From Macrostomum hystrix (Eukaryota > Animalia > Platyhelminthes), in the NCBI GenBank assembly GCA_950097015.1, contig CATNEN010000007.1, positions 12,648,001 through 12,712,000 of the forward strand: DNA of 64,000 nucleotides, given 5' to 3'. Below are positions 29,289-36,981 of the stretch, in pieces (positions within the stretch are counted from its first letter, which is position 1; the number at the start of each line of letters is the position of its first letter). Both the position numbers and the translations under genes were made by a program. The notes under the pieces were generated by a model. That model was not told the DNA's origin, did not search any database, and worked only from the letters and a program-made list of their open reading frames with translations.

Positions 29289-31354
29289 ATGGCGACTGCA
29301 GTAGCCCAGCTGCCCTATGAAAAGCAAAGCAGAACGAATCAGCGACAGCAACTTGAAGTGCAGCTAGAGCAGCAGCAGCAGAAGCAACCTCAGCAGCAAC
29401 AGCAATCACAACAACAGCAACAGAATCAGCAATCACAACAACAGCAACAGAATCAGCAATCACAACAACAGCAATCACAACAACAGCAACAGAATCAGCA
29501 ATCACAACAACAGCAACAGAATCAGCAATCACAACAACAGCTACCACAACAGCAACAGCAGCAGCAGCATCAGCAGCCACCTCAACAGCAGCAGCTAGAG
29601 CAGCAGCAGCAGAAGCAATCTCAGCAGCAACAGCAATCACAACAACAGCAACAGAATCAGCAATCACAACAACAGCTACCACAACAGCAAAAGCAGCAGC
29701 AGCAGCAGAAGCAACCTCAGCTGCAACAGCAACTACAACAGCAACAGCAGCTGCAGTATCAGCAGCCAACTCAACAGCAGCAGCAGCAGCTAGAGCCGCA
29801 GCCAACTCAACAGCAACAGCAATCACAACAGCAGCAACAGAATCAGCAATCACAACAACAGCTACCACAACAGCAACAGCAGCAGCAGCATCAGCAGCCA
29901 CCTCAACAGCAGCAGCTAGAGCAGCAGCAGCAGAAGCAATCTCAGCAGCAACAGCAATCACAACAACAGCAACAGAATCAGCAATCACAACAACAGCTAC
30001 CACAACAGCAACAGCAGCAGCAGCATCAGCAGCCACCTCAACAGCAGCAGCTAGAGCAGCAGCAGCAGAAGCAATCTCAGCAGCAACAGCAATCACAACA
30101 ACAGCAACAGAATCAGCAATCACAACAACAGCTACCACAACAGCAAAAGCAGCAGCAGCATCAGAAGCCACCTCAACAGCAGCAGCAGCAGAAGCAACCT
30201 CAGCTGCAACAGCAACTACAACAGCAACAGCAGCTGCAGTATCAGCAGCCAACTCAACAGCAGCAGCAGCAGCTAGAGCCGCAGCCAACTCAACAGCAAC
30301 AGCAATCACAACAGCAGCAACAGAATCAGCAATCACAACAACAGCTACCACAACAGCAACAGCAGCAGCAGCATCAGCAGCCACCTCAACAGCAGCAGCT
30401 AGAGCAGCAGCAGCAGAAGCAATCTCAGCAGCAACAGCAATCACAACAACAGCAACAGAATCAGCAATCACAACAACAGCTACCACAACAGCAACAGCAA
30501 CAGCAGCATCAGCAGCCACCTCAACAGCAGCAGCTAGAGCAGCAGCAGCAGAAGCAATCTCAGCAGCAACAGCAATCACAACAACAGCAACAGAATCAGC
30601 AATCACAACAACAGCTACCACATCAGCAACAGCAGCAGCAGTATCAGCAGCCACCTCAACACCAGCAGTTAGAGCAGCAGCAGCAGAAGCAACCTCAACA
30701 GCAACAGCAATCACAACAACAGCAACAGAATCAGCAATCACAACAACAGCTACCACAACAGCAAAAGCAGCAGCAGCATCAGAAGCCACCTCAACAGCAG
30801 CAGCAGCAGAAGCAACCTCAGCTGCAACAGCAACTACAACAGCAACAGCAGCTGCAGTATCAGCAGCCACCTCAACAGCAGCAGCAGCAGCTAGAGCCGC
30901 AGCCAACTCAACAGCAACAGCAATCACAACAGCAGCAACAGAATCAGCAATCACAACAACAGCTACCACAACAGCAACAGCAGCAGCAGCATCAGCAGCC
31001 ACCTCAACAGCAGCAGCTAGAGCAGCAGCAGCAGAAGCAATCTCAGCAGCAACAGCAATCACAACAACAGCAACAGAATCAGCAATCACAACAACAGCTA
31101 CCACAACAGCAACAGCAGCAGCAGCATCAGCAGCCACCTCAACAGCAGCAGCTAGAGCAGCAGCAGCAGAAGCAATCACAGCAGCAACAGCGATCACAAC
31201 AACAGCAAACAAAACAGCATAAGCCGCAGGTGCAACAGCTGCATCAACAGCAGCATTCAAAAAACAAACGGCAGCATCAGAAACAGCAATCACAGCAGCA
31301 GCAGCATTCGAAATGCCAAGTGCAGCATCAGAAGCAGCAACAGAAGCTACAACC

Positions 31355-31405
<51 letters not shown>

Positions 31406-31730
31406 GCAGCAGCAGAAGCTAGCGCAGCTATCGAATCGATGGCCCTTTTCGTGCCTTGGCAAACGAAAGTCGTCGTCCTCCAGACTGGTGGCGCCGTTTG
31501 CGACGCCCCAGACTGCTGGCAGCTCTGTGTTGGGGGCTCCCCGAGATCACCAAGATCTGGCGAAAGATACGGACGTTGCAGAGCTGGCGGCGCGACCCGT
31601 CACTGCTGGTTTGGTGTCACCAGACCTGGGCGCGAGTTGGCCAGTTCCGCTGCCCTCGCTGGCTCAGCAGCGCTCAATCATACTCAGCTTGGACAGCATT
31701 CTTGAGCAGCACCAATGCCAGCTAGCCTAA
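29289..31730 (+). CDS. Glutamine-rich repetitive ORF (~813 aa from ATG 29289); coding status unproven
   Basis: Stop-free frame of ~2.5 kb built from a 135-bp (45-aa) unit plus variant blocks; short unique N-terminus and ~100-aa unique C-terminus; no recognisable domain. Confidence 0.4.
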
Positions 31731-31732
31731 CC

Positions 31733-32452
31733 TCGATTCAGTCCAGTTTCCTGCCCGAGTCCATGCTGGCGAGCTACTAAGCCTCTGTGAGCGTCGATTC
31801 AGTCCAGTTTCCTGACCGAGTCCATGCTGCCGAGCTGCCAAGCCTCTGTGAGTGTCGATTCAGTCCAGTTTCCTGACCGAGTCCATGCTGCCGAGCTGCC
31901 AAGCCTCTGTGAGCGTCGATTCAGTCCAGTTTCCTGCCCGAGTCCATGCTGCCGAGCTGCCAAGCCTCTGTGAGTGTCGATTCAGTCCAGTTTCCTGCCC
32001 GAGTCCATGCTGCCGAGCTGCCAAGCCTCTGTGAGTGTCGATTCAGTCCACTTTCCTGCCCGAGTCCATGCTGCCGAGCTGCCAAGCCTCTGTGAGCGTC
32101 GATTCAGTCCAGTTTCCTGACCGAGTCCATGCTGCCGAGCTGCCAAGCCTCTGTGAGCGTCGATTCAGTCCAGTTTCCTGCCCGAGTCCATGCTGCCGAG
32201 CTGCCAAGCCTCTGTGAGCGTCGATTCAGTCCAGTTTCCTGCCCGAGTCCATGCTGCCGAGCTGCCAAGCCTCTGTGAGCGTCGATTCAGTCCAGTTTCC
32301 TGCCCGAGTCCATGCTGCCGAGCTGCCAAGCCTCTGTGAGTGTCAATTCAGTCCAGTTTCCTGCCCGAGTCCATGCGGCCGAGCTGCCAAGCCTCTGTGA
32401 GCGTCGATTCAGTCCAGTTTCCTGCCCTAGTCCCTGCTGCCGAGCTGCCAAG
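31733..32452. repeat. 61-bp tandem repeat, ~12 copies
   Basis: Unit tcgattcagtccagtttcctgcccgagtccatgctgccgagctgccaagcctctgtgagcg; starts 3 nt after the polyQ ORF stop. Confidence 0.96.
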
Positions 32453-33781
32453 CTTGACTGTCTTTCGAGAGACCGTTGAGATTTCATTTGAATTGCCACT
32501 TTTTAGTTTCGAATGCTATTGCACAGTTTATGTTCTTGTCCTTGTGAGTCATGCCCGTCTCGATGGGGCCGAGAAATACAAGGCTAGGAATGCTATGCCT
32601 TTAGTTGGAAAATTTATCAATCAGGTATTTAGTCGATTATTTCAAATCTGATTAACAGTAGAAATACGATGCGCGGCGCATTTCAAATGCACACGTATTG
32701 CTGCATCTCCCAAAATACGAGGGGTATTCAACCAATTGTCATGAAAATTCGTCTCTTTTCGGTTCTATCCGATGAAACAACTTCCAGAATGCCAAAACAT
32801 GGGTATTCGATATTCAAGATTCTTGTCGAGGTATCTGGAGGCGAAAGCCATCAATATAGGCTTTGAAATCTGGACTTTCGCGGTGGACTTTCACGAAAAT
32901 TGGTCATTCGGTTTGGGAGCTATTTTGAAGTAGGCAATGGGTATTTGAAATGCCCCCGTGGTCGTTTTCCAGGGGTGAAAATAGCGTGCTCTTTCTGCTG
33001 TTTATCGGAATGTGCTAATCATTCACCCGAAAGAGTCTCAGGAAATCCACCGATTCGGACTGCTTTGGTTCTCAGAGCATTTTCTATGCAATCCGCAAGG
33101 CATGTTAGGCCACAGCTTCCCTTTTTCATCTTGAAGTAAACGCTTTTAGTGCTCGACCGGAGCACTAAGCGAAAATAAAAAGTCCCTTCAACAGGCTGCA
33201 AAGCAATGCATAATTACACTTTTCGAGCATTAGGAATGTACGAGCGTTGATTGACAACAGATAGAATCTGCTTGCTGATTAGCATCTATTTGCAGATGGT
33301 GCAACAGGGTGAGTTATAAACCTGCGAATATCAGCCATGCAGGCCGAACACAAGTGCCGCTTGCTATTGAAGCAGAACGCTGACTCGCAAGCAACAACAA
33401 AATAAGTGCCAACTGTCTACTGTAAAGCGCTCACAATTGACATGCGATTTCATAGGAACTCTATCTGATGCAGGTCCGGCCCGCAATTCGGTGGGAAGAA
33501 ACCTAAGCGGATCTTGTTAAGCAAAAAACTTGTCTTTACATTTGTCACCTGTAGTTTTTCAGCTGAGGTTAAACTATTTCTTTCAACGCCACAGGTCGCA
33601 TGTTTAGTTATTATACTAAAAAATGAGGGCATTCTGTAAATGGAAAACTTGCACAAAATGAAAAAACTTGAGACCGCTGCTAGTTTAGCCGAAACGAATA
33701 AGCGGGAAAATTCTCAACAATACGAGCTACCAAAACAAAGTGAGCAGAATTTGTCTTTGCCGACGAAAACTTTGCACCGCT

Positions 33782-35044
33782 TTAAGAGGCCTTGGCGCCG
33801 CCGCGCTGTCCTGCAGGCTTGGCGGACCTTGCGGGCGCCTCCGCCGACTTCGGTGTGTAGGAGAATGCGGAAATGATGGCGATGACCTCGGTGACGGCCG
33901 GGAAGGCGATGCAGAAGCCGAAGATGTAAAAGAAGTCGTTGACTGGCCAGGAGTCGAGTAGGAACAGCAGCAGAGCCACCGAGCCGGCAAAGTGCGAGGC
34001 GGTGGCTGTGATTGGGTTAGGGAAACTCTGAGTTAAGGAATCGCGGATCGTTTATTGTCTGCTTTTAGTGGCTATTTGGTTGGGACAGGAAAGCCCGATG
34101 GCTGCGGACTGGGCAGAGTCAGAGCCCCATTTACAGCTGCTTGCGCAGGCTGCGCTCAATCAGCTGACTGAGGTCGAGGAGTGCGGGCAGCGCGATGGTC
34201 ACTGCGAAGATCGGCCAGAATCGGCTGTAGCTCCAGGCCCACATGACAAAGTAGCAGGAGCTGACTGTGCCGCCGCAGTGGATCATGATGGCTGCAGGAC
34301 GGGTGGGACAGAGAGTTAAGGATTATTTTGCTCGCCTTGACCTCCCGCAAAGTTGTAAGTTTCTACTACTAAAAATTTTATTTTTCAAAAGGATACAGAA
34401 AAGGCTTTGTGTCGGCAAGAACATCGTCACGCCGAACAGGAAGGACAGCATCTCAAATGCAAACAAAAAGCAGGAGACCGCCAACACGATGATGAACCTA
34501 AAATTAAATTCAATACGTTGTGTTAGTAGCTAATGCGAGCGAATTTATTCGCCATAAGATATTTATTTTTTCAACTTTCAAATGAAAGCGATACACTCTT
34601 ACTTGAGATCTTCAGCATTGTATTCTGCCGTGGTATAAGTAGTTGACAAAGAAGCCTTTATATGTAGATCCTGCAAGATCAGATTTTTAGAAGCAGATTT
34701 TTGCGGACTTAAGTAAAAAATTTGCATCAAACTGAGAAGCATGCATGGAAAAGACACCTAAAAGTGTAGAAGCTAAAAAAGGCCAAAGTCGCTTTTCATA
34801 GAGAGAGACAAACACAGGCGCATATATTCAGGGCGTAAACGTAGTTGAAGTGTTTTTAACTAGTACATAGTATTAGATTAAAAATTAAGCCTCATGTCTT
34901 ATTGATAAAATTAATGTACATGTTACCTATAACTATAATATGATTAGAAGTGGAACTTACCCGAGAAATAAAGATCGTTACTGTGATTATAATATGGGAA
35001 ATCAGAACTAGAAAACGAGCAGGTATAAGACCATTTACTCGCAT
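33782..35044 (-). CDS. TMEM107: Transmembrane protein 107 (ciliary transition-zone, MKS module), isoform using distal last exon (158 aa)
   Basis: Exons 35044-34961 (MRVNGLIPARFLVLISHIIITVTIFISR), 34670-34603 (DLHIKASLSTTYTTAEYNAEDLK), 34497-34397 (FIIVLAVSCFLFAFEMLSFLFGVTMFLPTQSLF), 34005-33782 (STASHFAGSVALLLFLLDSWPVNDFFYIFGFCIAFPAVTEV...). Matches TMEM107 motifs LVPSRFL, GVSMF..TQSL, AH..ASVAL, YIF.FC.A.PAVTE. Confidence 0.92.
34131..34291 (-). CDS. TMEM107: Alternative proximal last exon of TMEM107 (137-aa isoform)
   Basis: CAG acceptor 34294-34292, phase 1 like the distal exon; encodes SIMIHCGGTVSSCYFVMWAWSYSRFWPIFAVTIALPALLDLSQLIERSLRKQL*, which aligns to TMEM107 TM3-TM4; AATAAA downstream at 34056-34051. 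Confidence 0.8.
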
Positions 35045-36001
35045 CTTGAATGAAATTATGAAGTTGCTGCTTGTAACAATTAATGGAAAACACCAAACTA
35101 ATCCAAACCGCGAAGTCCAACAACCAACAAAAAATTGTTAAGAATGCGTAAGTTAAAAGCATTACAGTTTAAACAAGTTTCATCATAAATTCTTGGCAAC
35201 GGCATATTTTATTGTATAAAAAGTGTTTAAAAAACATATACGTGTTATCTGCAGATATTAAATTACAAAGAAGCTATATTACAAAACAACTTTGTTAAAA
35301 TAGACGCATAAAAGATTTAAAACAGTTCAGAAAAAAGCGTAAAAAATTAAAGGCACACTTCGTAGATCGTGGATAACTACATAAATAAATTTCTATTTGT
35401 TGTTTGTTTCTGTAAAGTAAATAAGTGAGCATTTTTAGTGTTCGTATATCCACTATTTGGGACTGAATTTTCAATAGAGCTTGAAGCTGAAATATTACTA
35501 TGATAAACCTAAAGCATGCTTTGAGGTTCCGTTCCTCTTTGCTTGGAACCTGTTCAAATGCACTTTTCAAAGATGTATCACTTAACTCCCCAACATGCAA
35601 TCTAATGTTTGCCGCGATTCCCTCAGGTAATTGCTGATAATTGCTGACCTTGCTGCTCTGTTATGAGCTTCGGTTTAGTATTTTTGGCTCACTAGTAATA
35701 ATAATAAATATAGTATTACAGTGTACCTAGGCTTAATCCAACCACATTCCTCATATCCGAAAACTTTATGGACAGCATATGCGTGACATATAGCGCACAA
35801 CATGATTCTGAGTGTTTTCTAAGATTTTAAGTAAGATTGCTTTAAATAGGTTTTAAAAAGGCTTTAAATTATTCTTATGTGTTCTTATATCTAGAACAAA
35901 TACCATAAATAGCTAATCATTATATTTTAAATGTTGTTTAATCTATAAAAAATATTACCAAGTTTAGCGTTTTTTACTTTTGTATTAAAAATAAAGTTCT
36001 A

Positions 36002-36981
36002 TGAGGTGCATTCAAAAAGTTCTTTTCGGTCCTTTGGCATTGTTTTGTAAATGACACACAGAACAAACTTTTTTCGAATGCTAGGCCCCTACAAGTTAAG
36101 TTTATGGCCTAAACCTTCCTAAGTTTTTAAGCCTTAGCTGGTGACTGTGTCTGAGCTACATGCATTTTTTTAAGCTACCCATCTATTTCTTGGCCATGGC
36201 AGAATCTTTTTCAAAGCAAGACGTTCGGAGCTTGATGAAGTTCCAATTCCTGCAAAGAAAGAAACCTCCGGAGATGTTTAGAGAGCTTCAGCAAGTGTTT
36301 GGTGACAGTGCACCAACTGAACAGACTGTTCGAAAGTGGTTCCTGTTGTTCACTGAAGGCAGAGAGAGCATCAAGGACAACGACCGCTCTGGAAGACCAA
36401 TGACTGCCACCAATGAGACCATGGTGAAGAAAGTGCAGGAGCTCCTGGATGATGATTGGCAACTGACTTGTGAAGAGCTGTCAGAAGATGTTGGAGTGTC
36501 AGTTGGCAGTGTGCACACCATTCTGACAGAGCGTCTCAACCTGCAGAAGAAATTCAGCAAGTGGGTGCCACACCTGCTAACAGGTGAGCAGAAGATGCAA
36601 TGTGCTCTGGCCGCCACCAACCACCTGTGCCATTTCCAGCGAGAAGGAGAGAATTTTCTTTCGTCTACCCTACTTGCCCGATTTGTCACCCTGTGACTTC
36701 TTCCTATTCCCATCTGTGAAGAAGCACTTTTAGGGCATTTGATTCGACAACATCGAGCACATCAAAGCTGCTTGCCAAGGTGCGGTGCGTGAAATGGACG
36801 CAAGAGGTGTGGGTACTGGAATCAGAGGTCTGGTGCATCGCTGGCAGAAGTGCAAGGACATTGGTGGTGAATATGTTGAGTGACCAAATGACATTGAATG
36901 ACCTAACCATGTTTTCATTGTTCCATATGTTTTTTGTTAATTTTTGCTGAGCACCGAAAATAACTTTTTGAATGCACTTCG
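36002..36981 (+). mobile_element. Internally deleted Tc1/mariner DNA transposon
   Basis: ~30-bp imperfect TIRs (tgaggtgcattcaaaaagttcttttcggt / accgaaaataactttttgaatgcacttcg) flanked by TA on both sides. Transposase N-terminus from ATG 36196 (HTH domains, WVPHLL motif) is joined out of frame to a PYLPDLSPCDFFLFP...RWQKC..IGGEYVE tail containing stops. Confidence 0.93.

Follow-up and report, generated by a model that had tools for sequence, protein, structure and literature searches.

TMEM107 is associated with ciliopathies (Joubert, Meckel and orofaciodigital syndromes), and its product anchors membrane proteins of the MKS module at the gate of the cilium. Both human TMEM107 and zebrafish tmem107l are U12-intron genes (PMC9992838; PMC6800510; bioRxiv 10.64898/2026.08.20.745718). 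Tandemly duplicated exons that are used in a mutually exclusive manner have also been described (Kondrashov and Koonin, 2001; Letunic et al., 2002; both as cited in PMC1874599). For exons 6a and 6b of the JNK genes (MAPK8-10), which have a U2-U12 hybrid intron, exclusivity results from the incompatibility of U12 and U2 splice sites (PMC1874599).

Here, we describe a TMEM107 gene in a 64-kb window of the Macrostomum hystrix genome, i.e., the whole stretch of DNA that was analyzed, in which an old tandem duplication has probably resulted in two TM3-TM4 forms that are made from one pre-mRNA by means of alternative U12 acceptors. The two terminal segments, designated 4a and 4b, resemble tandem mutually exclusive exons in that they are adjacent, homologous and of the same phase, follow a common upstream exon and swap an equivalent part of the protein. 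They differ from such exons in being terminal and of unequal lengths, each with its own stop, and in that the 4a mRNA keeps 4b as 3′ UTR, so that no mechanism enforcing exclusivity is needed. As in JNK 6a/6b, the alternative use of a duplicated pair appears to involve a U12-type intron; unlike in JNK, both TMEM107 acceptors have U12-type branch sites and there is one U12-type donor, which would leave the choice between them to the minor spliceosome itself. The locus has in common with vertebrate TMEM107, including zebrafish tmem107 and tmem107l, that it is a predicted U12-intron gene (a likeness at gene level, the intron position not being stated in those sources) of the transition-zone MKS-module family, and fish also possess two versions (PMC9992838; bioRxiv 10.64898/2026.08.20.745718). 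The fish versions, however, are two separate genes, whereas here two C-terminal halves are found in one gene. Alternative last exons that arise by coupled splicing and polyadenylation similarly provide two C-termini with separate stops, but differ from the present case, in which 4a-to-4b read-through means that some of the transcripts, at a minimum, have a common distal 3′ end. While tandem exon duplication with alternative use is already known, the present case is set apart by the predicted duplication of a U12 branch site together with its acceptor, with both alternatives U12-type and both segments terminal. A full-text literature search yielded no mention of a flatworm TMEM107, or of alternative last exons in TMEM107 that are homologous to each other.

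The TMEM107 gene occupies positions 33782-35044 of the minus strand, and the translations of its exons give a TMEM107 protein. Exon 1 (34961-35121) consists of a 5′ UTR that reaches at least to 35121 and of 28 codons (35044-34961, ATG at 35044) encoding TM1; it matches positions 1-23 of the Pfam TMEM107 profile (PF14995) with 19.3 bits. Exon 2 (34603-34670; 68 nt) ends in phase 2 and has U2-type flanks, with the donor GTAAGA. Exon 3 (34397-34497; 101 nt), delimited by RNA contigs, encodes TM2, ends in phase 1 and matches profile positions 48-79 (24.2 bits), with exons 1, 3 and then 4a/4b falling on consecutive parts of the profile. The donor that follows exon 3 is the GT at 34396-34395 (phase 1), and the two CAG acceptors, both also in phase 1, end at 34292 (4a) and 34006 (4b). 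Segment 4a (34131-34291) encodes an alternative TM3-TM4 with a short basic tail and stops at a TAA at 34133-34131, whereas segment 4b (33782-34005) encodes a more typical TM3-TM4 with a tail of ~30 aa and stops at 33784-33782. The spacer between the two segments (34006-34130), which contains an AATAAA at 34056-34051, is 3′ UTR in the 4a form and intron in the 4b form. Downstream of 4b lies a shared 3′ UTR (33225-33781), covered by contigs at 33307-34005 in one sequencing run (X5) and 33225-34005 in another (X7), these limits being contig ends and not a mapped 3′ end. A preliminary description of this DNA had placed the exons, acceptors, stops and AATAAA at coordinates that are all correct by sequence and translation, and its isoform lengths of 137 aa (4a) and 158 aa (4b) agree with those that we obtained by arithmetic from the exons. 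In a whole-genome six-frame search of the 220-Mb assembly, PF14995 matched this locus only (47.2 bits for exon 3 with its neighbors), with exactly two copies of the terminal segment; the locus is therefore single-copy, and a third copy or a paralogue of TMEM107 was ruled out. An apparent 132-aa open frame across exon 3 and 4a (contig positions 12682164-12682499) was also rejected, as it is broken by an in-frame TAA at 34325-34323.

Splicing was assessed using Logan contigs from four runs (X1, X3, X5 and X7); these contigs drop rare variants, and their depth is no measure of expression and does not provide isoform ratios. The X5 and X7 contigs are identical to the window, lack introns 1 and 2, which have ordinary donors (GTAAGT and GTAAGA), and have their exons joined at exact GT-AG borders, which shows that they derive from spliced RNA. 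The upstream joints (34670/34961 and 34497/34603) are present in X1, X5 and X7, with contigs spanning 34960-35121 including the joint to exon 2. Both of the terminal junctions proposed in the preliminary description were recovered from spliced RNA contigs of two runs: the exon 3 to 4a joint (34397>34291) occurs in X5 and X7, and the exon 3 to 4b joint (34397>34005) in X5, X7 and also X1, which represents a very close relative (~1-3% different) and has this joint at a depth of ~5. No 4a contig was obtained from X1 or X3, where the depth (~5) is too low to tell on 4a. In mRNA, each of 4a and 4b is thus joined alone to the common exon 3, as seen in the contig joints, and there is no 4a>4b joint among the contig joints listed. 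The assembly of the 4a form in both X5 and X7 indicates that this form is common enough to be assembled.

Directly beyond the 3′ end of TMEM107 is a minisatellite (31733-32453), in which a 61-nt unit is repeated ~12 times with 96% likeness between copies, and long CAG/CAA-rich (poly-Gln-type) repeats, in which periods of 135 and 483 nt are nested, are found at 29360-31428, inside an 850-codon plus-strand frame. Many contigs from all four runs touch the window only at a short multi-copy element (32882-32961), to which they are 90-95% alike, and run on into unrelated sequence, with a summed depth of up to 620. Upstream of TMEM107, an open plus-strand frame at 36160-36693 contains the HTH_48 domain of Mos1/mariner transposases (41.1 bits) and is probably a transposon remnant.

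The preliminary description was right on the two acceptors, but had missed the U12-type character of the donor and of both branch-site/acceptor pairs. The 5′ splice site common to both splices, GTATCCTTT (34388-34396, minus strand), is situated at the RNA-verified donor, fits the U12 consensus RTATCCTTT and is one of just two RTATCCTT matches in the window. Across both strands of the 64-kb window, the U12-type branch-site motif TCCTTAAC has two matches only, one before each RNA-verified acceptor on the minus strand, i.e., at 34315-34322 for 4a and at 34032-34039 for 4b, where the branch A is 24 and 27 nt upstream of the AG, respectively. Approximately 1.4 matches per window would be expected by chance, and the probability that both would lie <30 nt upstream of these two acceptors, and on the correct strand, is negligible. 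The two branch sites share the same ten bases, TCCTTAACTC. The 4b acceptor is additionally preceded by the near-consensus TTCCCTAAC (34024-34016, minus strand), located 11 nt before the AG. In U12 introns, the branch site is usually 10-20 nt from the acceptor, and the distances of 24 and 27 nt found here are longer; one further GT-AG U12 pair in the genome has its first AG ~30 nt past the branch motif. Removal of the intron to the proximal acceptor takes out 105 nt and to the distal acceptor 391 nt. On these signals, we classify the last TMEM107 intron as a putative U12-type (GT-AG) intron that would be removed by the minor spliceosome. As a branch site precedes each acceptor, the duplicated unit would have been branch site, acceptor and coding segment together.

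Genes for three snRNAs of the minor spliceosome were detected in the genome, all above the Rfam gathering scores, i.e., U12 (85.7 bits, with the branch-site-pairing GTAAGGAAAAT), U11 (70.4 bits, starting with AAAAAGGGT) and U6atac (47.5 bits). The Rfam model for U4atac gave no match in the genome in a search whose controls were uninformative, and U4atac may be too diverged for this model. Six further RTATCCTTT...TTCCTTAAC pairs were present in the genome, compared with two for a control pattern, and predicted canonical U12 introns thus occur elsewhere in it. RNA pairing as the selector between the acceptors was rejected: the fold of 33990-34400 gave no signal (z = +0.87), and the repeats around 4a and 4b are short ones only and probably due to chance. 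On the minus strand of the spacer, GCAGCCATC and CTGTCCCAACC are found at 34097-34105 and 34078-34088, respectively, and again at and just before the 4a acceptor. Their presence in the spacer may reflect chance or a remnant of the duplication, and the place is used by no RNA joint in the contigs.

Segments 4a and 4b had been described as homologous, alignable without gaps and strongly diverged, and BLASTP bears this out, with an ungapped alignment of 13/42 identical residues (31%, E 1e-6). They thus constitute adjacent, homologous tandem segments of the same phase. Taken alone, each segment also scores above the curated PF14995 cut-off of 26 bits, in line with the TMEM107 profile match anticipated for both, and covers the same profile positions (81/82-122). 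In a protein atlas, 4a and 4b are both nearest to the same three TMEM107 clusters (0.93 and 0.90). The lower profile score of 4a (29.8 bits, against 41.2 bits for 4b), together with the weak hydrophobicity of its TM3, would be in keeping with a decaying duplicate, in which the kept U12 branch site and acceptor would serve as a decoy, with a 4a mRNA that has a long 3′ UTR of ~900 nt and is noise or an unproductive product that only lowers 4b, no functional 4a protein being made. The same may be said of the lack of 4a relatives in short-query protein searches. The 52-aa 4a sequence had no match at E ≤ 0.001 among 1.8 billion protein representatives, a library for which such a query is too short, and a search for homologous proteins with 4a returned no candidate within a length window that left out the 137- and 158-aa full-length forms. 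With the same length window, an 89-aa open frame over 4b (33785-34051; residues 17-89 scored) gave two candidate proteins, none of which scored. As they result from short exon queries and from the length window, these blanks are uninformative on conservation.

The age of the duplication was assessed on the 46 codons of 4a and 4b that align without gaps, using NG86 and codon-order shuffles. At codon positions 1 and 2, 44 of 92 bases are identical, compared with 24.4 ± 4.1 in shuffles, none of which (0/20000) reached 44; the similarity of 4a and 4b is therefore far beyond chance. At codon position 3, identity (17/46) is no higher than the shuffle mean of 20.5, and the silent sites are thus saturated, as is also evident from NG86 values (dN 0.92, dS 1.51) that are consequently uninformative on selection. 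Saturation of silent sites implies that the duplication is old, as had been proposed in the preliminary description. Given that positions 1 and 2 have remained similar at this level of saturation, the positions that determine the amino acids would have been conserved in 4a as well as 4b over much of the period since the duplication.

Base composition points in the same direction. GC contents at the three codon positions are 0.50/0.46/0.87 in 4a and 0.55/0.53/0.82 in 4b, a pattern that matches other genes of the window (GC3 0.70-0.83), and the difference in 4a between GC3 (0.87) and positions 1 and 2 (0.48) is significant (p 2e-6). Outside the coding parts, GC is 0.40 in the proximal intron, 0.51 in the spacer and 0.42 in the 3′ UTR. 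An abandoned exon would be expected to have lost its three-base GC pattern, and the retention of this pattern by 4a, within a spacer and intron of 0.40-0.51 GC, fits an exon still in use. GC3 also switches within the gene, from 0.25-0.27 in exons 1 and 2 to 0.79-0.87 in exon 3, 4a and 4b.

The 52-codon frame of 4a was found to be intact and of coding-type composition, not broken; by itself, the open frame is weak evidence, since 23% of 4a shuffles also stay open. Composition and the comparison between the paralogous segments together fit constraint on both copies, and would argue for long-term selection on 4a. They also speak against decay, as do two features of the transcripts: X5 and X7 each yielded the 4a junction contig, even though Logan contigs drop rare variants, and the 4a stop is in the last exon, leaving mRNA decay without an exon-junction trigger. 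The failure to see 4a in X1 has to be read at the low depth of that run. We therefore regard a decaying 4a as unlikely, and favor two maintained TM3-TM4 forms produced through alternative U12 acceptors.

The same RNA contigs have a bearing on how the 4a form arises. A 343-nt contig containing the exon 3 to 4a joint, present in X5 and X7, continues unbroken from 34291 to 33976, i.e., past the 4a stop, past the AATAAA and 30 nt into 4b, and ends exactly at the point where both paths merge in the 31-letter word graph. Positions 34292-34396 and the other introns are covered by no contig in the four runs, which indicates that the 4a contig is not pre-mRNA. A mature mRNA with 4a alone is thus not what was seen; since the contig reads into 4b, some 4a mRNAs at the least have 4b as their 3′ UTR, with a distal end in common with the 4b form. 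A given protein contains only one of the two segments, whereas an mRNA may contain both, and their use is formally a choice of alternative 3′ splice sites. The term mutually exclusive last exons, used in the preliminary description, accordingly holds for the coding sequence but not for the mRNA. Its suggestion that the choice is made by alternative polyadenylation or splicing stands as regards splicing, given the two junctions; polyadenylation is not required, as the 4a contig passes the AATAAA.

This canonical AATAAA is located 75 nt past the 4a stop, with no other on the minus strand between 33200 and 34130, and its presence might suggest that the choice is mainly one of alternative polyadenylation, with cleavage at this signal competing with slow U12 splicing to 4b and most 4a mRNAs ending at ~34030. 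Contigs cannot show 3′ ends, and partial use of the signal is possible. However, the 4a contigs of X5 and X7 pass the signal, so that some 4a mRNAs at least must extend beyond it, and the proximal acceptor must be chosen whatever poly(A) site is used; we therefore consider polyadenylation a most improbable basis for the choice. The 4a form arises from the proximal 3′ splice site, and internal polyadenylation is not required for it. That the 4a signal is an artefact of genomic DNA, unspliced pre-mRNA or assembly duplication is scarcely credible, for although the runs are not recorded as RNA, the contigs are spliced at exact GT-AG borders, with no coverage of introns 1 and 2 or of 34292-34396, 4a and 4b share 31% of residues and are hence no assembly duplicate, and the locus is single-copy.

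Taken together, the data favor a model in which an old tandem duplication copied the branch site, the acceptor and the terminal coding segment (TM3-TM4 with the C-terminal tail) of TMEM107. The one U12 donor after exon 3 would be recognized by U11/U12 and bridged to one of the two branch sites. Use of the proximal branch-site/acceptor set would remove the 105-nt intron and direct translation of the 137-aa 4a form, with the spacer and 4b as 3′ UTR, while use of the distal set would remove the 391-nt intron and direct translation of the 158-aa 4b form. Both proteins would have TM1-TM2 in common; the parts that distinguish them are TM3, the TM3-TM4 loop, TM4 and the cytosolic tail, and this membrane half is the one with which a transition-zone scaffold would be expected to bind its partners. 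Compared with TM3 of 4b, that of 4a contains more Trp, Tyr, Ser and Cys and is less hydrophobic, and the TM3-TM4 loops of the two segments differ. TM4 keeps the IF...IA-x-PA core, and the C-terminal tail is short and basic in 4a but comprises ~30 residues, predicted to be disordered, in 4b. With the exons taken singly, hydropathy analysis gave two hydrophobic stretches per segment for 4a and 4b, TM3 of 4a being a weak one. Single-sequence AlphaFold2 models of the segments alone, with low pTM, showed two helices for 4b and one long helix for 4a.

A more far-reaching reading is that the minor spliceosome acts as the switch between the branch sites, that the TM3-TM4 modules serve different cilia (motile epidermal, sensory or protonephridial) with different transition zones, and that the pair is conserved beyond this species; we put this forward tentatively, as a possibility that is on the whole doubtful. 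In minor-spliceosome diseases, the transcript of vertebrate TMEM107 is one of those most affected, and the link between TMEM107 and U12 splicing may therefore be ancient. With one U12 donor and two U12 acceptors, the locus would allow the choice of branch site by the minor spliceosome to be tested in an animal amenable to RNAi and transgenesis. Isoforms with a common TM1-TM2 and different TM3-TM4 amount to a ready-made domain swap, which could show which half of TMEM107 holds its partners, and the pair could also show whether different cilia use different gates.
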